Positions 9,861-47,300 of a stretch of 64,000 nucleotides of DNA are shown in pieces; within the stretch, counting starts at the first letter, position 1; each line of letters starts with the position of its first letter. The stretch covers positions 5,270,001-5,334,000 of the forward strand of contig OZ059899.1 in the NCBI GenBank assembly GCA_964057225.1. The letters run 5' to 3'. The position numbers and the translations under genes were made by a program. The DNA comes from Auanema rhodensis. Lineage: Eukaryota > Animalia > Nematoda. Below the pieces are notes generated by a model. It saw nothing but the letters and a program-made list of their open reading frames with translations, made no database searches and was not told where the DNA came from.

Positions 9861-12800
9861 TGTTGTTCTGAAGTATGTTAGTAATTGGATTTCTAAGTAA
9901 TTTTTCTGGATTCCACATTTGCTCTCCTATCTTCTTAATTACTGATATAGTACAACAACTATTAGGTGTGTACATGTCTAAAACTTCTTAAACGACCTAA
10001 AGAGATAGTTTTTTTCCTGTGTTTTATCTCATTCCTTGTGCTGAGAACTCATTTACACTCCTATTGTAGAAAAATAGTTGAGATAGCTTTTTGTGAACTT
10101 GGGCTTCCATTTTATCTTTTTTTTCTTACTCAAATACAAACTGTTCTTCTGGTATCACACTATTTACTTTTTTAAATTGTGGATATATTGTTAGAAGAAA
10201 AAAAATTAGATTAATTGAACTAGATACCGTAGATAATTGGAGAGTATATTGCTCGCCTCGTTTGCAGTTTTTTTCTTACTCCTGTTTTTTTTCTTTATAT
10301 CACTATTTCCATCAAATCTTGAGATATTATAGCATATCCATCTCGCCGGTTCCAAGTTTAACCTTTTACAAATTAATTTATTTACAATGTCTGTTTAAAA
10401 TGCTCGGATTTGTAGATGTGATTATTCCATTTGGGTGCTTGACATAGTTTCGTCTTTAATTTATTATTTATTATTAATGTATGGTGTATAATATGCTCAT
10501 AAATGACCTAAAACCTACTTGTTTTAATAGATAATAGTTGAAAATGTTTCATAGTGAGCTAAGGTAGTTTGCTCAATTCTCTGTCCAGACTTGTTTTCAA
10601 TTGCCAATCTTGGATTGAATTTCTGTTCATTCTCATTTTGTTACGCTCTTGGCATTATATATGTTAAGTTGAAGAAAAAGAAGCAGAGTAGGAAGAAACA
10701 ATAGACATTTAAATTTGAAGTCAATGTTCTGTGACTGACAAATTTGAAGACAACATGGCACATTAAGATTATTCTGTTGTGTGGAATTGCTATATCTGCA
10801 GTTCATGAGACAAGCATATTTGCTAATCAGCTCATTTCACAATGTTGTGCGCACGATTCCTGAGAAAGGAACAGCAACAAAGCTTAGTTTAGAATTTCAG
10901 AACCTGCCTGCTGTAATATTGAGGTGATATAGCCTTGAATACTTTCCAGAACAGCCTCTTGCTGTTGAAATTCTACACGACATGATGCAAAAGCAAGATG
11001 ATACTTGTACTTATTCTTCACCAGATTTAGGAAGATGCAACGTTGAACTAATTGAGTTTGATGAAAATACACTTCTGCAGTGAAATACCTCTTCATTTCC
11101 CCCAATACGCATGTCTTAATATTGCACATACTCTCATACACTTGCTCCCCTCTCTATCATCCTTTCTCAGTTTTTTCTTCCTTAATACGGATAGAATGAA
11201 AGAGATGTAGAAAAGATAGATAGATAGAGAGATAGAGAGAGAAAGAGAGAGAAAGAGGGGGATATATATATATAGAGAGAGAGAGGGAGAGAATGAATGA
11301 ATTTAAGTGAATCGGTCTCCCGCTCGATCCGGCCACTAGCATGTTAAGGAGGTCTTATATGGAGCCTCTGTTTCCACGTTTTTTAAAAGAATAATCGGCG
11401 AAGAATGAAGACGTACAACAAGCTCAAACAAGGAAATGAAAGTTGAAATACTAAGTTTTGAAACTGACATTGACATGAACTAAAGACAATCACACATGCT
11501 TTTCTATATAAGAATGTTGACAGTTGCACTCATAAGAATCGACACATGTCCAAAAGCTTGATGAATCGGAAAGATTTGATTCTAATCTATGTTTTAAACG
11601 TTTTTATACATTAAAGGTTTATCAGGTGATTGACCAGTCTTAGTGCACATGAACAGTAATTTTTTTGTTTGTTTGTCAATAACTAGTATATGACAAAGGT
11701 CTGCGTTCCATATGAGGTCTGCTTAACATAGTATATCCTTTGCCCATCTGCATACTATGCTCCTCCCATTTCAAGGTTTTTCAGCTTCATCCAGCTTCAT
11801 CCAGCTAAACTCAGATGGCTCCTTCTCTATCGCGGCAGCCGTCTTGCTGTTCATCCACAGCAATAGCGTTTTCGGGTAGATTTCGATCACAAAGTCTTAT
11901 CTTCGGATGTAGCGTTTAACAACGTGAATTTGTCTCGAAGTCTTTCTGAAGTATTTTCCCTTTTCTTTTTGTTTTTGTTCTTGCATATGCTACTAACCTC
12001 TTCTATGTGATATCTCTGAATTTGAATTTTCAAAGATTTGAAAATGAATGAGGTAATGTATAGATTTATGAGAGATGAGATGGAGAAAGTACGAAACGAG
12101 AAACTTTTTGTTGTCAGAGATCTAAGAAATCTGGTGGTTAAATCATATTCAAAGATAGAATGCTGTCCAAATCATCATCCTACAATTTCTGAAAGATATG
12201 TCGTCAAACTGATCACGTTTCCTGTCAGTTTGTCTTGTTCAAGTCAATCAAAATGTTCTTCTTGACAAGCATTGTTATCAACCGTGTAGAACATCAATTT
12301 CTGCGCTATATCTTAACGTTCAGCAGAAATATGAAAGAAATGTAAATTGAGAAAAAGAGATTATATGTATATGAAAACAGGAGAAGAAACTACCATACAA
12401 ACTGCCAAAACCTCCTCCCGCGTCTTGTCATCGTGATCGTTGTCTCATTTTAGCCTTAGAACCCCCTAGTTCTCAAAAAACATTTACAACTCATTGTGTA
12501 CTTGAAGGATTGCACAAGCACATCATCAATCACACTATAGACTTAGCCCCTCATAGTGCATAACATCAAAGGACATCTATTAGCATAATATTACTTGAAT
12601 AAGTCAATTTAATTTTCTTAAAGAAAATAATTTTTTATTGTTTTGTTTATATGCTTTTAAAATTTGATTTTCGTCTTCTTTTTTCACTTTGAAATCGAAA
12701 AGAAAAAAGTTTTTGAACTCCCTATTTTCGCTGTTGAGATCGAAAATTGGGTGAAAAATCAAACTATTGAAGCACATATTCAAAACATCACCCATCCTTC

Positions 12801-15800
12801 AGTACGATGGAAATAGTGGCCCATAACTCATTTATGCTACAATTGGATATAATATTTAAATATATTCTTTATTTTCTATAAGTAATTTACCTCATTTGTT
12901 TTGAAAATCGTTGAAAGGAAAAAAGAGACCGATAAGTAGTTAGTTAACGGAATGACTGACAAGTATAGCATAGTTAACAGGCGTAATTTATGTCCTTTAA
13001 GCTTGTTTATATCGTAGAAAGATTCATTTTCCTTTGTATACTAGTAGATATAGTTAATGGTTTTCTTTTTCACTTAAGATATATTTAAGAAAACACATTT
13101 ATAGTCAATCATCTTAATATGGCACACCAGCTTTATTTTTAAAATTAAGTTATTATTTTTATATCTTAAAATAGATAAACTTTAGAAATAAACTTAGTTA
13201 ATCACTTTGTTACTATAAGTAAAATTTACTTAACTTCCTGATTTTCTATTTCCCAATTAAGCTGTCAGATTCATATGCTGCAAGGATTCCACGTGAATTT
13301 TGGTACATAGCAAAATTTCTGAATTTATATACTACGGTTGCTATTTTAAATTAGTATATAAATAAACTTTAATTTTATTTATAAGCAAAGCTTAACATAA
13401 TAATTTGAAACTATAATTATAATACTATAAATATTATATTATATCATATAATTTGTACTTATTAATATATTTATAAATATTGTTTAGATGGTTAATATCA
13501 AATAATATGATTCGAATTATTATTTTTTTCTATTTTTCTTTTTAAATATAAAACTGTGTGTTGCTGTATTAACCGTAATGAATTCCTTTTTCTTCATTTT
13601 TCTATTTTGTGTCTTATGACATAGCTATATAGTATTTCACTAATTTTTCCTCACAAACTATTTAGTATATTTAGTTAAATTTTCATTTTATATAAATCAC
13701 TTTTTTTTTGGAACGTGTGAAAGAATTGAAAATAGTGTAAGGATTAAAGAGAATATATAGATAGAAAACCATAGAAACAACTCACAAGAGAGAATGAGAG
13801 TGGTGAAAGAAGGAAAATGACAGAAAAAGGATGAGTGTGGATTGAAAACGCAAGCCTCATCATCATCATCATCAACTTTATGCTTATACTTCGCAGCAGT
13901 CCGTTAGTGTTCATCGAAGACATTTGCAGCTGTCTGAGAATCGTTGTCTAGTGGGAATAAAGAAATGCTCGTTTCGATTCATCTGAAATCATACATGAAA
14001 TACTGAAACTGAGTCTATTGAATCATTCAACTTCTTCCTTACACTTGCTTCTTCTTTCTTCTTTTTTTTTCATTTTTGTATAAATACTGTTAAGATACTG
14101 TAATATCAACTATAATCTATAGTTCATCTATAATTTAATCTTTTGATTATTTTTTTCTTTTTATATTAAGTATATGTTATAAATACATATAGTTTATTTT
14201 CTTTTCCAATTATGTGTTTTAATATATTTTAAAATAAAAACAAAAATCCTAAATGTGAATTGATGAACCAACTCACCAACAACTTATTTTCCTATGTTTG
14301 TACTCACATGTTTTTATCCTTGATCTTTAAGTTTTAACCCTATATAAGTTCTCTTCAATATTTTTCTAAAAAAAGAGTTAAGTTAAGCTTACATTGAGAT
14401 CCATGAGATTTGAACCTCATCATTCGAAGCACGTGTGTTTGCTATGGGCTTTCCAGTTTAAAGCATTTGGACGATGGAAAGACAATGCGGTGTTGTAACT
14501 CAACAAGACGAATTTAGTGTGTAGATAGTGAAACTTGCACACAGAAGATCAGTGATGAATGAGCAATCGTTTGAGAGTTGCGTGAATAAAGTTGCTCTCC
14601 TTTTGACAATAAGTAGTCAGAAAAGGATTTAAAGGCTAAAGCAGAACCTTAGAACTAGATAAAAGAAGACGAAATTCCTGATGGCTTACAGAGAAAGAGA
14701 ATGAAAGGGTTTTGGAGATGTTGACCAAAAGCCGTAATCGTTGCGTTGGCTTGATGAAGTAAACGGGCGACGACGAAACATACGTGAGGAAGATGCAAAA
14801 GTATAAGAGAACTAGAGGGGAATGAAGTAAAGGCGGGTTTCAAGAAAGTAAAAGATGGGACACAGAATGTGAAACAAAGAGAGAGAAAGATGAGCAAAGA
14901 GAGAGGAGAGAAAATAGAAGAACAACTAGCAATGGCCGGTAAAACGAAGAAACAATTGGATGACGAATAAATGGCCTACGGCTATTCCGGGCGGCATATC
15001 GGACAAAGGGAAGAGGGGCAGCAGTAGGAGGTATTCGACTCAATAGAGGGTGGGAATGAAAGAATTAGAGAATATGAGTTGAGAAGAGTGTACTAGAGGT
15101 GTAGAGATGAGGGAAACAAGGAAGAAATGAAGAGAAAGAGAGAGAGAGAGAATGAGAGAGAAAGAGTTGGAAGAGAAGTATGAGCTGTAGCTAGATTTAG
15201 AGGGTTCAGAACAAGCTGCAACTGATTCAACTCTTGAGGATTAAGTCTTCATCCAACGTCATTAAAATGCACTGCCTCTTATTCTTTCTCAATCTTTTCC
15301 GCCTATAAAGCAATCATTATCTCTTTTTTTCATCCCCCTCTCTCTCTCTCCCTCTATCCCCTTACCCTTCTCTATACTTCCTTTAGATTCTCTTATAGAA
15401 AACTTTTCTAATATTTTATGAAAATTTCCTCTTCTTAAAGTCTTTTTTCAATAGTATCAAAACGAAAAATAGAGTACCCGAAACGGAACTGAACAAGTTT
15501 GAAAAAGAGTTTCAAACAATTCTAAGAGAGAACGATTCGTAGTAGAAGTATTAGTTGTTGTAGTTGTAGTAGTAAGGTGTAATTGGAAAGAGTATTAATA
15601 CAACATTAAATATAAAAAAAACAATTGTTTTTCTTTTTAATTGCGTCTCGGCTTAAGATTTCAAACCTATCGTTGTTATGTTATCGTTTAGATAACTACT
15701 CTTTTCCTTCCACGTTTTTCCTTTTTTGGTTTCTTAGTCAAGTAAGCTCTAATTTTTCATCATCTAATTTGATTTTTATCTAATTTTCTATTCAAACATT

Positions 15801-16506: not shown

Positions 16507-18177
16507 GAGAGAAGAAAAGGAAGAAGACAGAGAAAAAAAAAGTTTTTTTTCGTGTCTTTTTCCGGAGAGCTTGAAGTAGTTTTTATTGTTATTTGCAAGA
16601 ATATATCTGATTTTCATGTTGACATACAAACCAATATCTATATCTGCTACTTCATTAATTTAAAAAAATGTTTCTATAGAATAATCAAACTTTGCGCTTT
16701 TTATTTCTCATTATTTTTTCTTTCATTTCCATGTAGTATGTTTATAGTTTATAAGAATTTTTTATTTAAAAATCAAAAACGTTATTTATAATTTTTTTTG
16801 TTATTTTTCAATTCTTTTAAAACAAAAAGAGTTAATGAATTTTTGTTAAGAAAGGTTAAAAATTAAGAAATCTAACACTATTTACCAAAGAACACATAAT
16901 AATCTTTGAAATTTTTTATTTAAAAAAATTGAATATAACATCTTGTCCTCATAAACATTTAATGTAAAATTCTAACAGTTCTATAAGATATCTGCTTCTT
17001 CGTAAAATTTTGTTAAAAAAATCGTAAAAATTGAGTGCTGCTAGCGATGTCATAGCTTTATATCTTATATATTATATAATTAAATGAATATATTATAAAT
17101 TTTAATAAAAAAAAAGAAAAAATTTGATTTTATATAGTATAGTAATATGACTGTTGATGTTTATTGTTATTCGTTCAATATTATATAATTAGCTCATGAA
17201 CCTTGATGTATTTCATTTTTTATTTCCGCTTTTTTAAATTTTTTAATTATAAAAAAAGCTTTCTTTCAATTTTTGAATTTAATATTTTAAGAATTAAATA
17301 TCTGAATTAAACGAAAAAAAAAGAAAGAATATAATATATTATATATAAGTTATATGACATATAGTATACTATATATAGAAATGCTGGACATCCTACAACA
17401 GTTAGAATGCTTATACATCAACTATACTTGTCGTTCACACTTCACTTTCTTCGTCTCTTTCAAAACAATGTAATGCAATGGCTTTTCATGTTCATTCACA
17501 GCCAGAAACACACACGTGTTTGACATAGCTAATTATGATAATAAGACAAAGAGAAAGTGAAGAGAGAAAGAGAGAAAACGAATTTCCTCTGATGTTAGAA
17601 GAGAGAATTAGCCGTCGTCTTCGTCACCTTCAATAGGTTAGGCTGCTGATCTTCGAGCACATCATTCATTCATTGTCTTTTCTCTGTTGTATGGCCGGGA
17701 TTTCCGTTTTTTGACTCTCAATTGCTTGAAGCATGACATCAGATTTATGTATATTGGATATAAAAATAATTTTTTTTCTGTTTTTCTTTCTTTTCTTTAT
17801 TTTCCTACTAACAATAATGTTAGTACTAAACTATTATTATATTTTATAAATCAACTATATATGTAAATATACGAAATGTATTAGTTATTAGAATAAGTTT
17901 TCTAAATATGAGATTAGAAACTAAGTAGATTGAAGTAAATAACACGTTTTTTTTGTCATTTTCATAAACAATTAGCATAAATAACTTAGAATATATATAA
18001 ATATAATATATACTATGAACTTACAGCTTCAAAAATAAAAATTGTTTATAGAAAATCTTGAATGTTTCCATTTTTGCAATGAAGTACAACTTGTAAGTCA
18101 CAAGTGAATCTTATCTTACATTACTGAATGTGAGCTGAATATAACTAACTAGATATACTATACGTATAGCATTTTAC

Positions 18178-18485: not shown

Positions 18486-19311
18486 TATGTGTATGTGTAC
18501 GTGTATGTATAAGTTTGTTTCATTAGATGCTTAAACAACATCTTCATATAGCTCAATAATTTTTCTAGATAATATTTCTTGAGGCTATATATCAAATTTC
18601 CAATGAATATCTTCATTTGATTTGTTTTTTCCTATCTGTTTCTTCTAAAAATGTTTCGAATTATGTTTTGAAAGATATCTCTTTCTAATTCTTCACATAT
18701 TCTCTTATACGTTCATTTCTTGTCTTTACATGAAATTTCAATTATTTCTCAACGTTTTCCTAAATGATATGTGTGTGATTTAAAACTTTTTTTATATTTG
18801 AAAAGAAATTTTTCTACATTCTTTTTTCAATTCTTCTTTTCCGTTTTTATGATTTTATGTGTCCATCATTCATCATACTCAATTCGCTGTCATTTTCAGG
18901 ATTCTAATAGACGTGACGTGTCATCTCAATTCATCTATTACAATCATTCTATTAGGACAGATTATCATCATCTTTTACAAATAACATTGTCATCTGAAGC
19001 TACAGAAGTATCAGCTCTAACTTCTCCATCTTTGTATTATCATCAGCATCATCGTTTTACTATATATATATAAACATATATTAATATATCGGACAACAAT
19101 TATATTCTGTACAGCCAGATTAATTATCATTAGTTTTCGTAAGCACAAGCTACAGATGATGTGAGATGAGCATGCGAGACGACGTACACTTGAAGTCTTG
19201 TGCCTAGGTTTATATCTTTCTAACTTGACTTCATATAACATAACAAGCAGCTTTAAAGCAGTATTCAAGCTTGTAACCTTATTATTCAACTATTAAAAGT
19301 CACGGTATCTG

Positions 19312-22656: not shown

Positions 22657-24555
22657 GAGAAGGGAAAGAGTAGGTGGGGTTCATGAAGAAATCATTTTGT
22701 CAAATGGTTTATTCGTTTAATATTGGCTGAACGAACATACAAATTCAATAAGGAATTACAATCTGTAATCGCGCAGGGTCAGTTTCAAAAAATTTGGTGA
22801 AAACGCCCTCATCAGGATGATAAATGATCTGAAGAAAATAAAAAAAAATGGAAATTTAAGTAGTGAAGAACCACAAATGCTATTGAGATCAGTAAAAGCT
22901 GATGATAGGATGAAAGAAAATGGTCGTCAAATCTGTTCATCATCATCATACGTTGTTCATCTGTTTCTTCCGAAGCTATTCTATCACTTCAGTTTCATTA
23001 TAATGAGCTAAGGAGGTATTACGACAAGGAATTAAACAGACAAGACGGTGATAACTGCTTCTCGTAAGGTGAGAAAGATAATGAAAGAAATGAAGATTCA
23101 GATTTTCATTATTCATCTGAAATAAATTTGAATAATAGTTAGTTTTCATTCATAAGTTACTTGAAAAATGTATTGGATAAAGAAAGCTCTTTATAAGTTT
23201 CTGAATGAAAGACATGAATTAAGCTAGAAGGAAGTACTTCTAACAATCATCATCATCATCCTCATCATTATAACTTGTACATTCTTGCTAAGCAAAATCT
23301 AGCAAATCTAAGAAAAGTGAGAGGAAAAGCAAATTTGTTTAAAAAAAAAAGAAAAAGAAAATGAAAGTGAACGAAAGATGTTCCTAATGAATATCAGACA
23401 AGATGTTAGATCAAGCGTATAAGCCACTCAAAAAATGAATTTTAAGTGATTTCATTTGGAATCCTTACTGGAGTCGTTTGTTGAAATTTAAAATTACAAG
23501 AAAAATGATGTAAAGCTGTCTAAATTTAATAAATTCCCAGCTCTACACATTGCTCCCAACCTCTCCCCTTATCCTTCCAAAACTCTTGCGGCTCTTTATA
23601 TGGACTAATGGAAAAAGTGCTCACTTATAGAACTAGTACTAGACCACAGGGTCTTCTTCTTCTTATTCGATTTCTTTCCTATTTCATCTTCAGTAGGGGA
23701 CTTTCCTCAAAAAGCTGAATATGCATAAAGCAACAAAGTATTTTCATTAAAATCTTGAAATACATTGAGCATTACCAAGAATAAAGCTATAATCCAACAT
23801 TTTTCTGAAAATTACAGCATTTTCCAACAATGAAACTTTTTTCTTCTTTCAGCTATGTCGATACTACAGTCTTATCCCAAGTATTGGATCGTTTAACAAA
23901 TCGAACGATATATGACAAACGGTTACGGCCACGGTATGTTCAATTATTTTCTTTCAAAAATCAAATTTAAACGAATTTTTCTTCATTTTAAATAAAAAAT
24001 TAAATGAAAAACAGAAAATATCTTGGAAATTACCAATATTGTTGCTATATTGAGTTTGATGTTTGATTAGAAGTGCTAAGTCAGAGGAAGGGCACTACAA
24101 ACATAATGTTGAAAACAAATCGAATAGAAGTTGTGTATCATGAGTTAAAAACCAAATATGTCAAAATCTCAGAAAATATTTCAAAAAACGCTTCTTTGCA
24201 ATCTGTTCCACATAATATAGATAGAGTGAAGTATTGGGGCGAAGACCATGACTTGTTTGTTGCTGAACATCTGAGTTGTAGATCTGATTCATTGTTTTCA
24301 TGTCTAATTTAAGCTACTTATACAATCTTAAAGCTACATCTTTCATGAAATAAGCCTAAGAATGAGAAAATGATAAGCACATAAGGTTCATGAAGACAGA
24401 AAGTACAATTGAACTTAATGCTACTGCTGCTAAGAATTTATGAGATTTATTTTGAAAAATAGAAGAAGAAACGAGAACAAAAGATTGGAAGAAGCATTTT
24501 TGAGTTAAAGATAGTGAGAAGTGATGAGAGAGAGATAGATATTAGATGATTTGAG

Positions 24556-24615
<60 letters not shown>

Positions 24616-26263
24616 AAGGCGGAATATTTGTAAATGGGGAAGTTGCTTATCACATTCGCTTTTGGAACATAACTTTCTTTTCTCCATAAAAAAAAACTTG
24701 GTCCAGTTTTAATAGCTCCATCGGGAACCTAGTTATGAATACAACTTTGTGATGTTCAGCAAAAAAAAGAAGGTATAATGATGTAAGCAACAAGATTTAG
24801 TTTTTTTTTTTTTAAATATTTTCATTTCAATATGTTATTTTGAAATAAAACAAAAGTATTATTCAATTTTATCAATCTTATGAAGTTGAAATAATATTGA
24901 AATAAGGCAGAATATGCCATTGCAAGACAACTAACAGCTACGAGGTCAACGAACCCCAAGTGGCCGAGAAAAAAGGAAGGCTGTCATCTTAAGCTTGAAC
25001 GAACTAAGATTCTTCAAAAAAGGTTCAAGTCAAACTAAAGTGAATTTGAGCTCTATTTTCAGTTTAACATACATATATGCATAGGAAAAAGATCTTATTC
25101 CATTAGGAAATTGTTATAAATCGTTAGAAAAAATGGGAAAAGTGAAAAATATGCTTAAAATATTTTATATATATACTTATAAAGTATATCTTTAACTATA
25201 TTAACTATATTATTTAATAAAATTGATTTTAGATACGGTGATAAGCCTGTAGATGTTGGAATTACCATTCATGTCTCATCTATTAGTGCTGTATCTGAAG
25301 TAGATATGGTAGGTGTTCAAACATTTTATTTTTACTTTAAAATATTTTTAAATAATAATAATCATTATTTTCTTTAAAAAATATATTTTTTTGAAATTTT
25401 TATGAAAGAAGAAATATTTTTGAGAAAAGTTTTGTTTTTGTTTATCTGTAAGAATATACCTTTACAGCTTATAATCAAAGATGAAAATCTCTCCCTCTCT
25501 CCCTCTCTCTCTCTCTCTCTCTCTTTTTCTTTCTCTCTCTCTCTCTCTGCCTCTTACTTCCATTCATTCTTTATCACTTTGTTAGGTTCATTTTGACAAG
25601 AGGTCAGATGATACCTGTGTGTGTTCGAGCTTTCAAACTGATCTTGTTCAAGCTGACAGCTGAAAATCGAACAAAAAGGTGGAAAAGAGGGATAAAGATT
25701 GAGTACGCGATTAAATAAGAACATGTGTCATACATGACGTTTTTTGTATTTTTTAATTTGAAAAAAAAACTATAAAATGTATTGATTTCACATTAAATTA
25801 ATATATGAACTATGAACTTAAAGTATACAAATTTTAATAAAAAATTACAGGATTTTACTTTGGATTTCTATATGAGACAGACATGGCAAGATCCTCGATT
25901 AGCTTTCGGTGATTTACGGATAGGTTCCAGCGATAAACCAATTACATCACTTACTGTTAGTACAATAATATTTATTTAATTAAATAATTATATATAGGTT
26001 GGTGTTGATTATTTGGATAAATTATGGAAACCTGATACATTTTTTCCAAATGAAAAGAAGTCATTCTTTCATGTTGCTACAACACATAATTCATTTTTAC
26101 GTATAGATGCTGATGGTACTGTGTATACAAGTCAAAGGTTAGTAAAATATTTATATAATTTATATAATATATTTATATAGATTAACAGTAACAGCTACAT
26201 GTCCGATGAAATTACAACTATTTCCAATGGATTCACAACGCTGTAAGCTGGAAATAGAAAGCT
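19312..26263 (+). CDS. unc-49: unc-49 shared N-terminal exons (signal peptide and extracellular domain through the Cys-loop)
   Basis: Exons 19312-19409 ([32 protein letters not shown], signal-peptide-like, phase matches the next exon), 23853-23933 ([18 protein letters not shown]), 25233-25308 ([25 protein letters not shown]), 25851-25955 ([17 protein letters not shown]), 25998-26137 ([17 protein letters not shown]) and 26181-26263 (Cys-loop [15 protein letters not shown], ends in phase 1). Exon 1 is less certain than the rest. Confidence 0.93.
22561..22659. repeat. (GA)n microsatellite in unc-49 intron 1
   Basis: ~100-bp GA run. Confidence 0.95.
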
Positions 26264-26449
26264 GTAAGTCAATATTCATATCTTAAAATATAATATATTT
26301 TTTCTAAAAACTAAATTAAATCCAAATTTTTTTATAAAAAAAAAAGTTTTTTTCTTTAAATCTTTGTGTGATAATAGATGTAGACGTAGACATATAGAGT
26401 AGAATGTGTTGTATGTAGACATCACAGTTTCAAACAAAAAAATTAAAAT

Positions 26450-26489
26450 AAATCTGAGAAAATAAAAAAAAAGAGTTGCACCAGGTCTC
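26450..26489 (+). promoter_or_regulatory. Putative intronic RNA docking site for unc-49 module choice
   Basis: AAAAGAGTTGCACCAGGTCTC (26469-26489) plus AAATCTG (26450-26456). GC-rich in a very AT-rich intron and complementary to 30308-30337 and 32647-32660. The function is inferred. Confidence 0.7.
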
Positions 26490-27080
26490 CAAAAATTATT
26501 AAAAAAAAAAGTGTATATACATATTAATATTAAAATAATTTAAAATAATATTATATAAACTTCTCTCATCATTATTTCCTCTTTTAACTATTTTTTTATA
26601 AATATATTGTAAGTATTATATTATAATTTATTTTTATTTTTATTATAATTATTATTGTATTTTTTTAATTTTATTCATTGTTGTTATTTTATTTGCTATA
26701 TTTGTTGTTATTTTTTTCATTATAAATAATGAAGAAAAGATTACGGTATGAAGAAATACGGTAAGAAAAATTATATTAAATATTTATTATTATTATTATA
26801 ATAAATAATAATAAAAATTAGAGAATTATGAACAATTGTTCAAAATCTCTTGGTTTTTTCATTTTCCTTAAAACCTTTTCAGCATTTATTTAAATATAAA
26901 ATCATATCATCTACAACTCAATATTCAACAAAATGCTTAAATTCTCATGTTATCAGGTAAATAATAATTTATATTTCTTTAAATAATTTTTGAATAATTA
27001 ATATACTAAAAATCTTTATTTATAAAATTAAAAAAATAATTTAATTGAATATAAATAACATTATACTATATAGTTAGAAT

Positions 27081-27134
27081 TGCATGATTGTTTTAGAAGT
27101 TTTTCTGTGTTTCTTGCATGTTCTAGATAGCATG
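27081..27134 (+). promoter_or_regulatory. Cluster of RBFOX (ASD-1/FOX-1)-type UGCAUG motifs upstream of the module A acceptor
   Basis: TGCATG at 27081 and 27115, GCATG at 27130; the module A acceptor AG ends at 27247. Confidence 0.5.
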
Positions 27135-27247
27135 ATGATATATTTTAATAATTTAAATAGATCTTTTCTTCTAATTTTCTATCATTTTCAATTATTTTAA
27201 ATTTTCTTCTCAATGAATGATTAGAACGTTGCTGGAAATCCTTCCAG

Positions 27248-30054
27248 ATGGCTACAGTATTCTCGATATCATATACATTTTTGGTCAAGAAGGTGTTGGA
27301 CGAGCAGAGTTTGAGTTGCCCCAATTTGTTTTGGTTGACGTGAAAAATACCAACATAACTGAAAAACTTAGTTCAGGTTGGTTTTTGAGATTTACTCAGA
27401 ATAGTGTTGTCTAAGCCCATCTGCCAAATGCTATGGGCTTCAGCATTAAGCTCAACATTATGCTCTGATTGAGGATTGATTTGAATGATTTTTAGGAGAA
27501 TATTCTCGTCTTGTGAGTTATTTCTTTTTCAAACGCAATATTGGCTTCTATCTGATACAAATCTATTTACCATCGATCCTAATCGTTGTCATCTCTTGGG
27601 TACGTACGTCTATACTTTGATGTTATTGTGTTCTCAAATATATTTATATACTATATGATATAGTATTTAATTGAACAAAAAAAAATGTTATAGGTATCAT
27701 TCTGGTTATCACGTGATGCAACACCAGCACGTGTAGCTCTAGGCGTAACGACAGTTTTAACGATGACAACTTTGATGACGACAACAAATGTAAGGTTCAT
27801 CTGTTCATAACATCATCATATAACATGAAACAAACATTTTTGTAATCATTAAATGAGGGAAAATCAATTTAATTTTATTAAAATATTTTTATAATTTAAA
27901 TAATAATTATAATTATATATTTCAGTCATCAATGCCAAAAGTATCATATGTTAAAAGTATTGATATATTTCTTGGTATGTTTTAATTTATTTTATAAAAT
28001 AATTTAATTATTAGATAATCATATGTATATTTTACATTTCAAATTGAATGTGAGGGATAGATAAGAAAGTGAAATTGAGATGATTGGCAATTTGTCACTA
28101 AGTTTCGTGATTAATTCATTTCTTGTTGTATATCTCTATCTCTTTTGCTGTATATATACACCTACATATACACATGAAGTTCATCACTTGGCAAATTGCG
28201 GTTGATCATCAGAAAACAATTGGCCGACGTCCTCGGATAGGTTGGACAGGCGTGGATGCGCGGAGCCGTACCTAGCAAGGTCCTATAGCTATTCTATCTA
28301 TCCCTTGCTATCCTTTTCTCTCTCTCTCTCTAATTAACCGACTTCCTCTGCTGTCTTGTGAGAGAATTTGTAATATGTTTTATGTTAGGTGCGATGTAAG
28401 CTGAATTAGTTGCAACATACACGCAGTTTTAGCATGTTGAACAGATAAGAGATACTGAGAAATGTATATGAAATAAGAGAGTACAAGAGATGTAGAAAGA
28501 GAAATAGTCAGATGATCTAAATAAATTTCTTCTCTTCTCTAAGCATCTTCCTTATGTGTGATATTTCATATAAAAGTTTCAAAAATCTTTCATCCACATC
28601 TTGATAACTAATGACAAACAGTCGCTTCTGGCGACAAATTGCTGAATGATTACCATACTTCAATCTCTCAACGCCTAATATTTCATTACAAAAAAATTTT
28701 CTTTAGGGACTAGTTATCACAAACAGTTTTAACATCAAAAACATGAAAGATATATTAACAAACTTAAGTTAAAAACAAATTATTTATACAAGAAAACAAA
28801 CCATAGCTTGAACGGGAAGTTTTTTTGTTTTGTTTTTTCTCTTCTAGAGATGAGATTTAAAAAAAAAAGAAATGTTTCTTTAACAATGTTATCATCTTCA
28901 AAAACTTTTTTTTTCTTCAAAAAAGTTATATCGTTTATGAACTACTTGGCATAGTTGAGCAATTAATCCAATTCGAGTGGACTACTGACTAAGACAACTG
29001 TCGTTGATAAAATGAAGAAGAAGAAGATAAAATCATTACGTAATTGTGGATAGATGAACAGGAAGATGGATGAAGAAGAAAAAGCATTTTTGAACAGCTT
29101 CATCACATATAGATATAATGAAAATCTTCTGGAAATCATATAAAAGTTTGAGAGAGTGAACGAAGGGAGGGTCGGGCAGAGTGGGATGATGATGCAAGCA
29201 ATGAAGGTGTGGCAAATTACAATTGAAATTTTAAAAAATGTTGGGAAAAATCTTGCAAAATGAGTAGGATGTGAAAATGCTGTTTGATCACTTTAGGTGT
29301 ATGTTTCATGATGGTTTTCTGTACTTTATTGGAATATGCAGCTGTTGGTTATATCTCCAAACGTATGAAACTAGTTGAAAGCCGTAAGAACTCAAGGTTT
29401 GTTGAGTTAAAATAATATTTTCACAATATTCAATCAATATAAAATATAAAATTGAGATGTTTTAATCGAAAAAGAGTTATAGAGCTCCATTATTGGGAAG
29501 TTCTCCAGAAGATGACGAAGAAGCTAATATAGGTCGATCATCTGTTTCTTTTTTTAACAGTGGGTATCGACCATTTTATTCTTCAACTGATCAATCAAGT
29601 CATCTATTTCTTCCGGAACCTCCACGACAGATTATGGTAATGCTCTCATCTATGCTCGAATCTCATTGTCTTCTTCCTATTACAGGACTCAGATTGTTTA
29701 TGTGTTTTACCTAAATCTGATTCTGCTAGGCCATCAAGGTAATATTTAAAGAATTACAGATTATAATGAAACTTAAACTTATTCTAGAGTTTCATTTATA
29801 ACTGTTAATTCTATGAGACGTGGTTGGTATATACCAATTATGGAACGAATAAAGCCATCAAGCATAGACAAATATTCTCGTGCAATATTTCCAACTGTAA
29901 GAAAATTGTTTTGTTTTTTGGAAATATTTTTATAGAAATTATCAAATAATTTAATAATTTATTTCTTCAGGTTTTCGTCCTTTTTAATGTAATTTATTGG
30001 AGTTATTACATACGTATAAGTCATGCTGATGATCTCTTGAATATAGATGAATAA
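27248..30054 (+). CDS. unc-49: unc-49 C-terminal module A (UNC-49A: loop C, M1-M4)
   Basis: Phase-1 acceptor gives [10 protein letters not shown]...ELPQF; then [72 protein letters not shown] and [10 protein letters not shown]. Stop 30052-30054. Frame is intact across all exons. Confidence 0.93.
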
Positions 30055-30307
30055 CCTGAATAATCATCAATTATTTCTACAAATTTTTTAAAAAATTTAA
30101 CTTCATTTCTACATTCACTTAAATATCTATTTATAATCTTTTTTATATTTGAATAATATAAAAATATATAAGAAAATAATAATAAAATTCCTTTTCTTCC
30201 TTTTAATTTAAATATTTTTTTCTATTAATTATATGAAAATAATATTATTATATATATATAAATATACAAAATATATAACAAATCATATTTGAATAGCATC
30301 CTTGAGT

Positions 30308-30337
30308 GAGACCTGGATGCAAACTCTTTTCAGATTT
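30308..30337 (+). promoter_or_regulatory. Putative selector sequence for module B
   Basis: GAGACCTGG-a-TGCAA-a-CTCTTTT-CAGATTT forms 21 bp (two single-A bulges) plus 7 bp with the docking site, ending 51 nt before the module B exon. Confidence 0.7.
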
Positions 30338-30388
30338 CCAAATAACTTTTAATTTTAATTTTTATAAATAAAAAAAAGAATATTTTAG

Positions 30389-32084
30389 ATGGATATACAA
30401 CAGCAGATATTGACTATTTTTGGGGACATAAGAAGAATGAAGATCAGAAAAAAGCTGTAGCTTTTGATAAATTTATGTTACCTCAATTTCGACATAGTGG
30501 TTATAGTGTCAATATAACTAAAGCTGTTACTTCATCAGGTATTTCATTTGATTTATGAAAATCTTTTTTTGATATACAAACTTTCTACAGGGGAATATGT
30601 TCGACTTTACTTTGAAGTATTATTAGTACGTAATATGGGTTTTTATTCAATGAATATTGTTATTCCTTCAATGCTTATTGTCACAATATCATGGGTAAAA
30701 CATATTTTTTGTAAAAAAAAAATTAATTTTTTCAATTTTTAGGTATCTTTCTGGCTTAATCGTGAAGCTTCCCCTGCTCGTGTCAGTCTTGGTGTAACTA
30801 CTGTCCTTACAATGACTACTTTGATTACTACAACTAATAATTCAATGCCTAAAGTTAGTTATATCAAAGGATTGGATGTTTTTCTTAATTTTTGGTAAAT
30901 TTTTATATATATTTTTTTATATAAATTTCTTTAATTATTATAGTTTCGTCATGGTTTTTGCATCATTAGTAGAATATGCTGTTGTATCATATATGAATAA
31001 AAGAATAGTTTTAAGAAGAGAAAAAAGACGAAAACAGGTTTGATTTATAATTTTAATATTTAAATTATATTTTAAATAATATTATACAGTATACATATAA
31101 TTTAACTTATTTATTATATTTTTTAAGGCTGAGCAACAACAGCGAACGGAAGTTCCAATGTTTAGTAACAACTTATCACCTAAACAACCAAATAACAATG
31201 TAAGTTTTTAATCTTTATCTAATATCCATATAATTAATATTAATATATTTTAATATAATATTAATCTTTGCTTTTTCTTTGTTATATTAACTAAATTTAG
31301 TCGTATGAAATGGAAATGCTCTCACAAAATTCAACACCAGCTAAAAGTAATCATCATGTATGTTTTCATATTAACTTTGAATGTTTAATATTTACTAATA
31401 ATTGAATATTATATAAATAATATATTAAATATTTCATTAATTATTTGTTTTTTTTTTCAGACTGATCTCTATTTTGGACAAAATAACTCGTCAATGGTAA
31501 GTAAAATTTAAAAAAAAAATAATATTATAGCTAACTATATATTCTTATGTTTGTGTTGAATTTTTTTTATTTAATTCTTTTCAGCATCAGCTTATGGAAA
31601 TTCCAGTAGATTGTGATTGTAGGACGATACCTTTAATACAACATCCACGACTTGTAGCAGATAATGCTCATACGTTGTGGCCAGCACCATTTGCACGACC
31701 TAAAAAGGTAAGTTCCAGTAGTTATCTACTACATAACTTTATCAGAAAAAATAATAATTAATTAACAAACTATTTAATTAATACTTTAAATTATAATTAA
31801 AGTTTTTTTTAATATATTTAAATCTTAAGGCATCAAGAACATGTCGCAATGTAACACCAGCTAAAATTGACAAATGTAGTCGTTATCTGTTTCCACTTCT
31901 ATTTTTCGGCTTTAATGGTATGTTTTTATTATTATTGTTATGCTGCAAATATAAATAAAATATCCTAAAACTTGATTAAAAACTTTTATTTTCAGTTGGA
32001 TACTGGACAATTCTGACAGTTCTGAGTTCAGTTTCAGAAAATATGAGTAAAGATGAATGGACTGCAATCGACATCGACGAATAA
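30389..32084 (+). CDS. unc-49: unc-49 C-terminal module B (UNC-49B)
   Basis: [116 protein letters not shown]. Stop 32082-32084. Confidence 0.95.
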
Positions 32085-32646
32085 TGGCTACAATTCAACT
32101 TCATATGATATGAGCTTTCTTCCCTTCTTCGTATTTCTTCATTCTCTCCCTCTAACGCTCTCCCAAACTCTCTTTCGTTCTCTCTCTCTGTCTATCTCTA
32201 TATTTCCCTACCTATTCTCTTACAGTAAACTCTTTTCTTTCAATATTACTCCTTTGCCAGTGCTTGCAAAATCATATCTGGGCCCAAAGCTGTAATTCTC
32301 CTTCTCTTTCACTTCAATTAATGTTTTTTTTTTGGAAGAAACAAAAAGAAGCTTATATGGATTACCATTATAGCTCATGTTGATGATTATATGTTTGTTT
32401 ATCAACAAATATATAAACATTCACAAATAATATGGCCTTTTCTTTGTGTCAATCTCCGGTTAAAATCTGTTATTCTTTTTATATTAATTAAGATTTCTAT
32501 TAAGTAATAACAGTAATATAACATATATCTTTATATCATCTTTACTATAAGATGAAGAAAAAAGAAATTCAAAACAAGCAAAATAATTTGTTGTTGTTTA
32601 TTTAAAATGTGTATGTACTATATGAATTGAATAATCATGTACATAC

Positions 32647-32660
32647 CCTGGTGCAACTCT
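32647..32660 (+). promoter_or_regulatory. Putative selector sequence for module C
   Basis: CCTGGTGCAACTCT is the exact 14-nt reverse complement of 26472-26485 and lies between the module B stop and the module C acceptor. Confidence 0.7.
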
Positions 32661-33231: not shown

Positions 33232-33279
<48 letters not shown>

Positions 33280-33590
33280 TTTCATTATATATGAAAACTT
33301 TCAAAATACCATTCTCATTTTTGAGAATATACATATGTATACTGAAAAAAACATTAATTATATTCTATGTGTATATATTGCTTTCAACATTTCTTTTTCC
33401 GACTTTTTTTTTTGTTTTATTTCATTGCACTTAGGTGTCTGATTTTTATTATTGTGGGTACACAAAGATTTAAATGAATTTCTTTACTAATTCTCATTTA
33501 ATATTATTTTTAAATATATTATATACTATATACATATAATCAAATATAATTTGTTTTTTTAAAGAATTTGATAATAAAAAAAAAATTTAG

Positions 33591-35104
33591 ATGCATACAC
33601 AACGGATACAATCTCTTATCAATGGTGCTCTGCTGAGGATCCTAATTGCGCTAATGCTGTTCAGACAAATCAAATTGAGCTACCATCTTACAGATTCTCA
33701 GATGTTTGTGTCAATCGTACAATGGCTACTACATCTTCAGGTATATTCTAAATTATTATATATTTATCTCAGAATACTAACTAAATCTTTATGTTTAACA
33801 ATCATTTACAATGATATTCTTAAGTTGTTTTACCGGAAAAAGCCATATATTGTAGATCATAAGGTCTGAATTCAATATCTTAGCTTCAATACTTCAAATT
33901 TTTTTCCATTTCATGTTATAATAATTTTATAATTAAAGCTTATAACATAAGAATAAGCTTAAATTTCAATATTTTATTAACATTTTCAGGACATACTCAT
34001 CAAATTAATATTTTAAAAGGTTTTTAAAACAATCAATTAAAAGTTCTTGTAAAGTGTTTTGTAATATAACATCATCATTACTAAAGCTTTAGCTTCTTAT
34101 TGCTTCATTCTTTCTTGTTTTTGTCCTGTTGTCCAAGCAAAAGCTTCTATATTATATATTTAATAATATTATATATAATATATAATACTATACATATATT
34201 ATTTTAATATTTTAGGATCATATTCAAGATTATGGGTTATGTTCATATTTGATCGTGAAAGTGGGTTTTATATGTTACAAATATTTGTTCCTGCTGCTCT
34301 TGTTGTTGTTATTTCATGGGTTTGTTTTACAGTATTCTAGAATATTTATCAAATCCTAATACTTGAAGGTTTCATTTTGGATCTCACGTGATTCAGCCCC
34401 ATCGCGTACTGTTATTGGTGTTATGACTGTACTTACTGAAACTCATCTGATGACAGGAACTAATAGGTAGCTTATCTGAGTATTCTGAAAGTTTTGATTA
34501 ATTTTAGACGACTTCCCCCGGTTGCATATGTTAAAGCTGTGGATGTCTATTTAGGTTTCTGTTATTTATTGGTTGTATTAGCTTTAATTGAATATGCTGG
34601 GGTTGCATATTCTAAGGTAATAACAACATTTATAATATTATTATTATATAGCTATATTATATTTTCAGAAAAAGAATGAAGATAGACGACGTCGAGAAAA
34701 GAAAACGGAAGTTAAGCCAGCAGCTCCTACACCTGATCTCCTACATGGTTCGTTTAAGATTGGTTTTCTATTGTTATAACCTAAATATGTAATTCAGATG
34801 TTCGATTAGCTCAATGTACATGTAATACAGCTGGAACTTCAATTATAGCCGTTATCAAACAGCCGAATCAACAGTTCTGTGTTAAGCATAGTCACATCGA
34901 TATTGCTAGCCGAATAATCTTCCCTAGTAGTGTAAGTTGGATTGAAAGTTATTCTTATCAAAATATAATTCATACTTATAGTTTCTTGTTTTTAACATCG
35001 TTTTCTGGGTCGTCTTGCTTGCTAAAGCTGATCGCTTGCCATACTTTTCAGAGATGGAAGCAGCACATCGTTGCCCTACTGACTTACAACTGAAAAATCC
35101 ATAA
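33591..35104 (+). CDS. unc-49: unc-49 C-terminal module C (UNC-49C)
   Basis: YAYTTDTISYQWCSAEDPNC, GSYSRL, RDSAPSRTVIGVMTVLTETHLMTGTNRRLPPVAYVKAVDVYLGFCY, KKNEDRRRREKK, HSHIDIASRIIFP. Stop 35102-35104. Confidence 0.95.
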
Positions 35105-44308: not shown

Positions 44309-47300
44309 GAAGAATTGATATAAGCTTTATGTTGAAATACCAATATTAGCGGGTTGTATTTCCATTATCATGTTGTATCGTATAGGTTAGCGAAAAACTG
44401 TTTAATTTACAAAACGTGCTGACTATCCGAATATTGATGCTTGTTTGGAGCACATTAATTTATTAGCAATAATGTAGATTACGTGTTATATTATTATTTG
44501 TATTTGAAAATAATGTCTATAGGCCTGAAAGTTTTTTTTTTCAAAGGAAAAATGAATTTATCTGTAATTTTGTATTTTGAAAATTTTGTGAATTCTTTTT
44601 TTGGAAAAGGTTGCTTTGATTTCTTAGAGAACTTTTGACTTTAATATCATATCTTTCCATTATTCGTTCTAAAATGGAATTGTGAAAATCCTGATAAATC
44701 TAGAGATCAGATTAATAGAAAAAATATTCTTGAGATCGTTCTCACACTCAACATACAAATTTGAATATTCTAGGGGAATTGAGAGTTTTGGTAAATTTCT
44801 CAAAAATAAATTTAAAACAAAAACAGCTTATTCCTGAATTTAAAAAAATTAAAAACTGTGTGCTTGAAATTTTATTTTACATTTTGTTCGATAGAAGTGT
44901 GGAATTATTGCTGTACAACCAATGTTTTTTTGTTAATTTTGAAAGCTTCGGAGGTGAAAATTTGAAAAAAAAAGAAAAGAGTTTTATTTGATTTGTTGAA
45001 ATCGAGAATATTGATGATATAGTTCGATTAAAAACATATAATATACATAAAGTCAATTGATTAGTCAAGATGAAAATGAAATAGCCTGATGGTAAGTAGC
45101 CCATAAAAGTTAGAATCTGCTATATGGCTGAGTTACGAGACATAGAATGCGAGTAAAAGATATGTGATTGCTCAGACCGGAGACATAAGAATTTATTTGC
45201 TCGATTTATCGGATCATGAAATGGAGCAGAAAACATTTGGTCGTCTTTGAAGTTACTTATGTCTCCTGTGAGTAGTCGGTTGACTAGTCATCTCAGACAA
45301 TCCAGTGATTTTAATTTTGCTCATATTAGCACATAGTTACTGTCATCATAACGGATATCTTATATAACCTCTATAGTAATAGTATCCAAATAAATTCAGA
45401 AATCTGTTACCTTAAACTATTATTTCTGATAACTTAATCTGTATATTCTATTATAACTGATAATATTACCTAAGATTATGGTATGTTTTTAACATATTTA
45501 TTTATAATATTTATAGTTGTCCATGATTTTTATTATTTGAAATAGAACAAAAAAACTTTTTTTTTTTTGAAAGAAAACATTAAATTGCATGTATTAATTC
45601 CATTAAATTCAATTGAAATTACTTAGATATATACGATGACATAGTCTTTTAATCATAATTTTTATGATAAATTGACTGTTCGTCGTCCTATTTCAAATCG
45701 AAATGTTCGTTTTGATAGAAAGTAGTGACCGTAATCCTGTTGTAATGATTTGATATCAACATTCATGACAATGGTCTTGCTTTTCATTATCATCTACATC
45801 TTTTCTTTCATGTAGTTGTCATTCATTGATGACAGTAGTCTAGTTGCTGTCTATCGTTCTATCACTAACCTGGATTCTGATTTTCTTTTTAAAAGATTCA
45901 ATGTAAAGAGAGGAAGAGAGAGAGATTAATGTGGAAACAAGGTGAGAGAGAGAGAGAGAGAGATGAGAGAGTGAGTAAGTGAAACATGGAATGGTTGTGA
46001 ATACTGTAGTTGATTGATAACGAACTGAATCTCGACTAGTTTGCCGTTCCTTTCATTTCAATTGAAGACAAATAAAATAACTTTGTCGATAGAAATAAGA
46101 AATTTCAATTCTTTCAGTCCTCTGAACTGCATGAAAATTCTTTAAAAAATGGTTTTTTGCTTGTTTTGAATGTAATATACAGTAATAGTGATTAAATGAA
46201 GACAAAGATAGTAAAGGAGAACGTTTGTCGAAATAGCTTTGAAATCAAATGAAAATGAAAATTATTATCTATTAAGATAATATTCCGTTAATTTATAATA
46301 AATTTATAAAATTACTGTTAATTATTATATTTTTCTTTATTTTCATCAAGTCAAATAGATAATCTTTTTCAACAAAAACTAATATATATTATGTTTTTCA
46401 ACCCTATGTATAATTAATTTTATAATATAATTATAAGTTTGAGAAATTTATTTTATTTCATTTGCCTTTTATATTTTCCTTATTCCCTTATTTTCTTTTT
46501 TTTCAATCTATTCCTCTTTCTTTTTCTCTCTATCTTTTTCTCTTTCTCTCTCTCTCTCTCTCTTTCTCTCTTCATATATATATTTAAGTTTATGATCTTC
46601 GTCGGACTTCTTTGAGCTCACACTAGTCTTCTCTTTCGGATCCTATGATTCTCTGAGTTCTCTTGAATATAAAAACTATTTCTTTAATATTCCTATATAC
46701 ACCCTTCTGTTTCTCCGATTTGCCTTCAAAACTAGCAGACGTTGGCGTTTTGTCCTTCACTTTATGGCTTCAATTTTTGAAGATGACGAAGAAGAAGAGA
46801 AGTGAGGATTACGGTAGTTCTATCCTATCATAACCGATGTGTATTTCACATCTGTCATCAGAAGTTGTCAAATTGACAAATTGAATTTTGTACTGTCTTA
46901 CTGTATAATGTAAATTCTTCCTGAAAAGTACAAATTAGAAGAGAAAAAGTGTATATTTTGCAGAATATTTTACTATATTGAGAAATTTATATAATATATC
47001 TTGTAAACATCTTCATTTTCTTATTATTTCTAAAAAGAAAAAGATGTTGTTATTTCATTGAAATCAAAAAAAAAATTCATTTTGGTTCAAAGATGAAAAA
47101 AAAAACTTTTTTCTTCTCATACAGAACTATTCACTGATGTTAAGGTAGGAAGATATTTTGTCGGAAAAAAAATAAAAAAAAGTTCCGGAACTGAGTCAGC
47201 CGGAACCTCAAAAAAGTGTAATAAAAATAAAAAAAAAAGGACAATATTTTAAAAATAAAAATACAAATGAACTCTTTAGAATATTTCTTGCGATTTCACA

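Follow-up and report, generated by a model that had tools for sequence, protein, structure and literature searches.

A conserved intronic docking sequence probably helps to choose the subunit made from nematode unc-49

Introduction

How does a pre-mRNA come to skip the nearest of three alternative 3′ modules and to divide itself between the other two? The question is raised by unc-49, the textbook example of a single locus that encodes several subunits of the same receptor. In nematodes, the inhibitory receptor of body-wall muscle is UNC-49B/C, which is also of interest for pharmacology in parasites, among them Haemonchus. The papers that can be searched describe the alternative splicing of unc-49 without a cis-acting mechanism for module choice, and offer no explanation for how the proximal module A is skipped and the pre-mRNA divided between modules B and C. 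Here, we analyzed a 64-kb stretch of Auanema rhodensis DNA that carries the gene (hereafter, the window) and compared it with other nematode genomes. The conserved competing long-range helices described below are a concrete candidate for the cis-acting mechanism of unc-49 module choice.

Results and Discussion

Organization of the unc-49 locus

The locus is the orthologue of the GABA-A receptor gene unc-49, with a shared N-terminal part and modules A, B and C. tblastn searches with UNC-49A, B and C proteins from Auanema, Haemonchus and C. elegans identified five shared exons and the three modules in the window (Table 1). A shared Cys-loop ligand-binding block precedes three tandem blocks, each of which contains the remaining part of the binding domain and TM1-TM4. 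The exons of the window are 94-100% identical in amino acids to the UNC-49A and B products of Auanema JU1783. Beside tblastn, synteny with Sec1/unc-18 backs orthology to C. elegans unc-49, and orthologous unc-49 gene models carry PF02931 and PF02932. The gene plan is identical to that of C. elegans, where the A, B and C blocks come after five shared exons (Bamber et al. 1999 as summarised in PMC6920096). The start of module A given in Table 1 corrects that of the original prediction, which had been made from the letters of the window. In addition, (U)GCAUG motifs are found upstream of module A and may contribute to repression of this proximal module.

Table 1 Position of the unc-49 modules and of the putative docking and selector elements
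Feature	Sequence or boundary	Position	Strand	Remark
Last shared unc-49 exon	Cys-loop end, ...CKLEIES	26180..26263	+	donor GT at 26264-26265
Outer helix arm	AAATCTG	26450..26456	+	pairs with 30331-30337; particular to the window species
Docking site	AAAAGAGTTGCACCAGGTCTC	26469..26489	+	205 nt downstream of the last shared donor
Docking core, 14 nt	GTTGCACCAGGTCT	26475-26488	+	identical in Auanema JU1783 and H. contortus
Three (U)GCAUG motifs		27081..27135	+	110-165 nt upstream of the module A acceptor
Module A (UNC-49A-specific exons)	acceptor AG 27246-47; stop 30052-54	27248..30054	+	AATAAA at 30181
Selector B and outer arm	GAGACCTGG-a-TGCAA-a-CTCTTTT; outer arm CAGATTT	30308-30330 and 30331-30337	+	complementarity to the docking site
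Module B (UNC-49B-specific exons)	acceptor AG 30387-88; stop 32082-84	30389..32084	+	
Selector C	CCTGGTGCAACTCT	32647..32660	+	perfect 14-nt complement of 26472-26485
Module C (UNC-49C-specific exons)	acceptor AG 33589-90	33591..35100	+	end approximate
C. elegans dock-C	GGGTCGATTGCAC	BX284603.4 (chromosome III) 10,524,445-10,524,457		
C. elegans selC	GTGCAATCGGCC	BX284603.4 10,530,067-10,530,078		
C. elegans candidate dock-B box		BX284603.4 10,524,384-10,524,407		
C. elegans candidate pre-B site		BX284603.4 10,527,883-10,527,914		

Two selectors are complementary to the same docking site

The original prediction had proposed a docking site in the intron that follows the last shared exon, with one pairing partner before module B and another before module C. 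All the letters given for the docking site, selector B, the outer arms and selector C were verified at the coordinates of Table 1. Selector B is positioned 52-81 nt upstream of the B acceptor, about 255 nt past the A stop codon. Selector C is found 565 nt past the B stop. It had been thought to lie beside its acceptor, but with the start of module C at 33591, it is 931 nt ahead of the C exon.

According to RNAduplex, docking site and selector B form a helix of 22 bp with two 1-nt bulges (dock:selB, -31.6 kcal/mol), which reaches -36 to -38 kcal/mol when the outer AAATCTG/CAGATTT helix is included. Docking site and selector C form 14 perfect bp (dock:selC, -27.7 kcal/mol). The docking bases engaged are 26468-26491 with selector B and 26471-26486 with selector C. 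Because both predicted helices occupy the same docking bases, the two pairings would be mutually exclusive. A partner upstream of module A was searched for and not found, so that there is, as anticipated, one partner per distal module and none ahead of module A. No Rfam family matches the docking/selector region.

In order to compare the pairings with background, the conserved core +/-6 nt was kept as a fixed query and run against the 6.35 kb of the window that separate the acceptors of modules A and C. Selectors B and C are the two best partners of this query (z -6.5 and -4.7, respectively), and block-wise dinucleotide shuffles never reached them (0/60 for each). With the core as fixed query in JU1783, the two best partners are again a pre-B site (z -5.4, 0/60) and a pre-C site (z -2.7, 1/60). 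In Haemonchus, the best two partners are B-104 (z -3.2, 0/40) and C-644; the latter ranks second in 23.5 kb but is not above background by energy (z -0.8, 7/40).

On the other hand, an unbiased scan for ungapped stems between the whole intron and the pre-B and pre-C spacers of the window gave best stems that were matched by 87/500 and 50/500 shuffles, respectively. By species, this test was significant only for P. mayeri, Haemonchus and the pre-C side of JU1783. Since the unbiased scan is not significant in the A/T-rich window, the statistical case rests on a docking site defined by conservation, independently of complementarity. With the site defined in this way, the complementarity in the window exceeds that of shuffles. 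RNAduplex runs of the whole intron against 200-nt windows were uninformative, being dominated by long A/T-rich chains with interior loops, and the predicted local accessibility of the docking site was not consistently high. Complementarity of species-specific flanks was rejected as a covariation signal, as these extensions beat chance only at selector B of the window (p=0.006; 0.09-0.47 for the others). Finally, a 16-bp A/T-rich match within the window (26355-26370 with 33459-33474) has no conserved counterpart and is not claimed here.

The docking/selector layout recurs in Rhabditina

The same layout was observed in six other rhabditine species, with a docking site 55-215 nt past the donor (205 nt in the window). 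Apart from trivial matches, GTTGCACCAGGTCT is the sole substring of at least 9 nt that this intron has in common between the window species, JU1783 and H. contortus. It corresponds to 14 invariant columns, the rest of the intron being unalignable. In each of the three species, the pre-B and pre-C sites are the two best downstream partners of the core, located 14 and 23 kb from the docking site in Haemonchus. The docking sequence of P. mayeri, at donor+180-220, is a different one, and its pre-B and pre-C partners overlap: a 19-bp match upstream of B and a 17-bp perfect match upstream of C share 9 nt on the docking side. Selectors are found ahead of both B and C in the window, JU1783, Haemonchus and P. 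mayeri, and the docking intervals of B and C overlap in these four species. The stronger helix is that of B in two species and that of C in two, and the proposal that helix strength sets the B:C ratio is not supported. Outside Rhabditina, searches in S. ratti and B. pahangi yielded A-like genes that stand alone.

These comparisons bear on whether the complementarity arose by chance in an A/T-rich, repeat-rich locus. The non-significant unbiased scan of intron 1 against the spacers of the window, as well as the many low-complexity inverted repeats within the locus, would fit with this view. However, the 14-mer is unique in the 64-kb window, as is its reverse complement, the two best partners of the conserved core fall at homologous places in three species, and P. 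mayeri and Caenorhabditis (see below) reach the same layout with independent sequences. Chance is disfavoured, and we regard it as very improbable.

Within the helices, selector substitutions are mostly transitions that yield G-U pairs, except for the pre-C selector of Haemonchus, where a 1-nt bulge takes up an A-to-C change. Because the core is invariant in the group formed by the window species, Auanema JU1783 and Haemonchus, there is no classical double-sided covariation within this group, and support from sequence change comes only via the comparison between clades. Of the conserved islands with compensatory changes that had been proposed as a check, we thus retrieve the islands, G-U-compatible changes and clade-specific complementary sequences, but no double-sided covariation in the core.

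A core kept as sequence in the window, JU1783 and Haemonchus is also what would be expected if the three elements were copies of a double-stranded DNA motif or of a protein-binding RNA motif (e.g. an intronic enhancer), with a single copy in one orientation and two in the opposite one, complementarity being a by-product; an inverted DNA motif would give the same pattern. However, unrelated yet complementary sequences are found at the same three places in P. mayeri and Caenorhabditis, and the departures from perfect complementarity are mostly G-U-compatible transitions or single-base bulges that would damage a DNA motif. As for the orientation, with the docking site one way and both selectors the opposite way, it is constant in every species. 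Copies of a motif are accordingly an improbable explanation, and the comparison between species supports a docking/selector reading.

A possible mechanism for module choice

The five shared exons are joined through a single donor (26264) to module A, B or C. We propose that the docking sequence in the pre-mRNA can pair with selector B or with selector C, never with both. Each helix would loop out 3.8 or 6.2 kb, that is the earlier module or modules including their acceptors and 3′ ends, and would draw the shared donor near the distal acceptor. Looping would offset the kinetic advantage that module A, itself without selector, has as the proximal one. Such helices, if formed in vivo, may activate the B and C acceptors, and their competition may influence the B:C ratio. 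As related species including C. elegans share the layout, the conserved docking sequence probably helps to choose the UNC-49 subunit, and we consider competition between dock:selB and dock:selC as the best explanation of module choice, with a probability of roughly 0.7. One point against it is the distance of selector C from its acceptor, 325-930 nt across species, which is far for simple approximation.

The location of the selectors also suggests a variant compatible with this explanation, in which the pairings are real but mainly control 3′-end formation rather than acceptor activation. By sequestering or looping out the cleavage/polyadenylation region of the preceding module, pairing would let transcription and splicing reach the next module. 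Indeed, each selector follows closely on a stop codon: in all species mapped, selector B is found 83-255 nt past that of module A, and selector C about 80-565 nt past that of module B. Downstream of the B stop of the window, the first canonical AATAAA (32702) is 42 nt beyond selector C. Moreover, coupling of such pairings to polyadenylation is discussed in the PGRP-LC paper (PMC6191721). However, selector B is merely 56-136 nt from the B acceptor, a position that acceptor activation fits equally well. A main role in 3′-end formation is rather unlikely.

Going back to competition between the two helices, the wider proposal is that of a switch common to Rhabditina (Auanema, Strongylida, Diplogastridae, Caenorhabditis) that would decide the muscle GABA-A subunit, selectors of the 3′-UTR region coupling suppression of the upstream 3′ end to activation of the next acceptor. 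We see the chances of this proposal as evenly balanced. If true, this switch would be the first system of its kind in nematodes.

Comparison with known docking/selector systems

Judged by its sequence layout, the unc-49 case joins the known class of competing RNA pairings at a 3′ variable region, of the Drosophila PGRP-LC type. In both genes, a single constitutive donor is joined to any one of several 3′ cassettes, which are arranged in tandem, contain more than one exon and have 3′ ends of their own. The docking element is located in the intron past the constitutive exon, selectors, in unc-49 those of B and C, are found upstream of cassettes, and the pairings, which span several kb, would compete for the docking element. 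Unlike PGRP-LC, the proposed unc-49 case concerns a Cys-loop receptor gene of nematodes. Its proximal cassette A has no selector, and the selectors of the other two are positioned in or beside the 3′ UTR region of the cassette before. Up to about 0.9 kb separate selector C from its acceptor. Caenorhabditis has distinct candidate docking boxes for B and C, and no alternative 5′ splice site is masked.

A docking site/selector system is also described in Drosophila Dscam1 exon 6, with related 14-3-3zeta, Mhc, srp and MRP clusters (PMC4691838, PMC8791459). As in these systems, one selector at a time would occupy the unc-49 docking site, and conserved islands stand amid diverged introns. In contrast, Dscam1-type clusters contain single internal mutually exclusive exons that are spliced onward, and a repressor (hrp36) is needed on the unselected exons, whereas unc-49 picks whole terminal modules and its exclusivity would also come from 3′-end formation. 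In the searchable literature, no paper links unc-49 with RNA pairing and no docking/selector elements are reported in nematodes, in agreement with the view that this system had not been described. The reach of docking/selector control, with arthropods and the few cases in mammals, would then include nematodes.

Adjacent candidate docking boxes in Caenorhabditis

In three Caenorhabditis species including C. elegans, we observed another docking box, GGGTCGATTGCAC, which is invariant among them. It pairs with GTGCAATCGG, about 449-499 nt upstream of module C. GTGCAATCGG is the top-ranked partner in 3/3 species (z -5.0 in C. elegans), with dock:selC energies no better than those of shuffles in C. 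brenneri and C. nigoni (z about 0). A candidate pre-B pairing (GGGGTAGGCG... with CGCCTAACC...) is at background (z about 0) and has a consistent position, 56-67 nt upstream of the B acceptor in the three species. The candidate B and C docking boxes adjoin without overlap. Hence, competition of the B and C partners for one docking core, as originally predicted, fits the four species where the docking intervals overlap, and is not supported in Caenorhabditis, with its adjacent boxes and a B pairing at background. Lineages with one shared docking site and Caenorhabditis with two adjacent docking boxes offer a natural comparison of how one function would be served. C. elegans permits a direct test, as the candidate elements are short, unique and now located on the chromosome (Table 1).

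A second candidate pair was seen in Haemonchus (ATCGATTGCATGTGTCGA with 46991-47010). It resembles the dock-C/selC pair of Caenorhabditis, but its partner lies within the last intron of module B (z -1.6).

Anatomy of the locus and its predicted pairings

The region is the nematode unc-49 locus, with an exon map obtained by tblastn with UNC-49 proteins and strongly A/T-rich introns (11-20% G+C). In the nearest relative found, Auanema sp. JU1783, per-exon amino-acid identity is 94-100% and the gene order (Sec1, unc-49 A/B/C, cation-efflux gene) matches that of the window.

Features of the unc-49 locus, in window coordinates
Feature	Position	Details
(GA)n tract	24546-24619	shared intron
(CT)n tract	25494-25567	next intron
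Last of five shared exons	26180-26263	ends ...CKLEIES; tblastn
Shared donor GT	26264-65	tblastn
Arm of 16-bp complement	26355-26370	
GU/GUAG-rich stretch	26370-26425	immediately 5' of docking site
Docking site	26469-26489	
Three (U)GCAUG motifs	27081-27135	110-165 nt upstream of A acceptor
Module A	first exon from 27248	stop 30052-54; tblastn
selB, candidate selector	30308-30337	before module B
Module B	first exon from 30389	stop 32082-84; tblastn
(CT)n tract	32132-32220	just past B stop
selC, candidate selector	32647-32660	before module C
First canonical AATAAA after B stop	32702	42 nt 3' of selC
(CT)n tract	33235-33284	upstream of module C
Block shared with JU1783	33432-33480	110-160 nt before C acceptor
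Arm of 16-bp complement	33459-33474	within that block
Module C	first exon from 33591	tblastn

The original prediction, a docking site able to pair with either selB or selC, is confirmed as an observation, and all of its strings are present where it placed them. RNAduplex gives a dock:selB helix of 22 bp with two single-base bulges (-31.6 kcal/mol), reaching -36 to -38 kcal/mol once the outer AAATCTG/CAGATTT helix is added, and a perfect dock:selC helix of 14 bp (-27.7 kcal/mol). The two helices occupy overlapping docking bases. The 14-mer CCTGGTGCAACTCT and its reverse complement are each found once in the 64 kb. Upstream of module A, the search from the docking site onward gave no comparable partner, in line with the original prediction.

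Conservation defines the docking site independently of pairing

Complementarity in one species is insufficient, since low-complexity DNA yields equally good stems fairly often. An unbiased search set the initial 600 nt of the intron against each spacer, pre-B and pre-C, and took the best ungapped stem; shuffled sequences equalled that of the window in 87/500 and 50/500 cases. The docking site can, on the other hand, be defined by conservation, independently of pairing. GTTGCACCAGGTCT is the sole non-trivial substring of at least 9 nt common to this intron in the window species, JU1783 and Haemonchus contortus; it provides 14 invariant columns in a three-way alignment where the rest of the intron is unalignable. 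The selector cores are also conserved islands (CCTGGTGCA.CTC before module C, AGACCTGGTGT before module B).

The docking core ±6 nt was then used as a fixed query against the region from the A acceptor through the C acceptor, with shuffles for z. In the window, the two best partners precede the B acceptor by 58 nt (z -6.5) and the C acceptor by 929 nt (z -4.7), each matched by 0/60 shuffles. The two best in JU1783 are C-823 (z -5.4, 0/60) and B-77 (z -2.7, 1/60), named likewise by distance to the acceptor. Over 23.5 kb of Haemonchus, the best partner is B-104 (z -3.2, 0/40) and the second best C-644, whose energy is at background (z -0.8, 7/40). Immediately 5' of the docking site, the GU/GUAG-rich stretch is semi-conserved in JU1783 and Haemonchus and has the invariant box TAGTCGTGGGGTAGGCGTG as its counterpart in Caenorhabditis; this stretch may bind a protein or serve as a second docking site.

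Layout in other Rhabditina

The comparison set comprised seven species, all of them Rhabditina. In Pristionchus mayeri, an unrelated docking sequence is located 180-220 nt past the shared donor. Two stretches of it have partners: 12189-12205 is perfectly complementary, over 17 nt, to 17599-17615, which precedes module C by about 330 nt, and 12197-12215 forms 19 bp with 15322-15340, which precedes module B by about 136 nt; the two docking intervals share 9 nt. The pairings gave z values of -4.4 and -2.1, and 2/500 shuffles were as good in the unbiased pre-B stem test.

The intron of C. elegans, C. brenneri and C. nigoni contains a small number of invariant boxes. One of these, GGGTCGATTGCAC, 106-120 nt past the donor, pairs with GTGCAATCGG, 449-499 nt upstream of module C and its highest-ranked partner in 3/3 species. 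The energy is significant in C. elegans only (z -5.0, 0/60), two G-U pairs lowering it to background in the other two. A second box, TAGTCGTGGGGTAGGCGTGCCGTT...CCAGAGA, could pair 56-67 nt upstream of the B acceptor in 3/3 species; with z about 0 and a G/U-rich query that pairs promiscuously, this is a candidate lead only. A pair resembling the Caenorhabditis pre-C pairing was seen in Haemonchus, between 24224-24243 (GATCGATTGCATGTGTCGA) and 46991-47010 (TCGACAAGTGCAGTCGG) (17 bp, -25.1 kcal/mol, z -1.6), with its downstream arm within the last module B intron, not after module B.

Across the seven species, where a helix falls short of full complementarity, the cause is for the most part a transition that still permits a G-U pair, or a single bulge, and an A-to-C change in the Haemonchus pre-C selector is taken up by a 1-nt bulge. 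This pattern fits constraint at the RNA level better than a DNA motif. Double-sided covariation is absent inside the invariant docking core.

Proposed mechanism

These sequence comparisons support a docking/selector reading of unc-49. From the observed anatomy, statistics and conservation of the elements, we infer that helices form, most likely on the nascent transcript, and affect splicing or polyadenylation. A helix would put module A, alone or together with module B, into a loop and place the shared donor beside the chosen distal acceptor. Because they use common docking bases, the selB and selC helices would compete; module A, transcribed first, has no selector. A B:C ratio governed by helix strength so far finds no support, the B helix being stronger in the window and Haemonchus and the C helix in JU1783 and P. 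mayeri.

In the species compared, selB lies 56-136 nt upstream of the B acceptor and 83-255 nt past the A stop codon, and selC precedes the C acceptor by 325-930 nt and follows the B stop codon by roughly 80-565 nt. These distances, and that to AATAAA in the window, place the selectors within or beside the 3'-UTR/poly(A) region of the preceding module, which suggests that the helices may additionally block use of its 3' end. In C. elegans, the 170 nt from the UNC-49A stop to the B acceptor (9833-10003 of the locus sequence) hold no canonical AATAAA.

The (U)GCAUG motifs upstream of module A are Fox-1/ASD-1-type sites; JU1783 carries AGCATG, TGCATG and TGCATG upstream of its own A acceptor. Caenorhabditis has instead an invariant block of about 45 nt reaching into the A acceptor (GTGGTGGGTGACGTGTCGCTTTGCGTGCTTTCAG). 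The (GA)n tract is complementary to the three (CT)n tracts (50-74 nt, 82-92%). In JU1783, C. elegans and P. mayeri, the spacer between modules B and C is likewise full of CT-rich tracts; such tracts may be microsatellite noise only, or may mark polypyrimidine-binding sites. The block of about 50 nt before module C (about 19025-19075 in JU1783) contains one arm of the 16-bp complement, a pairing for which no conserved counterpart was found.

Relation to known systems and phylogenetic reach

As in Drosophila PGRP-LC, one donor faces tandem terminal cassettes, with a docking element and upstream selectors. Unlike PGRP-LC, this case is in a nematode, its proximal cassette (A) lacks a selector, selectors adjoin the 3' end of the previous cassette, selC is distant from its own acceptor, and the candidate docking boxes are separate in Caenorhabditis. 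In searchable full text, no paper was found that reports docking/selector pairing for unc-49 or for another gene of nematodes; conservation within the intron may have drawn an early remark. Reviews on unc-49 cover alternative splicing itself and nothing further. The docking/selector reading would account for a classic locus, and C. elegans allows an immediate test.

In S. ratti (clade IV) and B. pahangi (clade III), the gene for the A-like subunit stands alone and is not followed by B or C modules; the three-module locus may thus not be universal among nematodes. In B. pahangi, a B/C-type gene is found nearby on the opposite strand.
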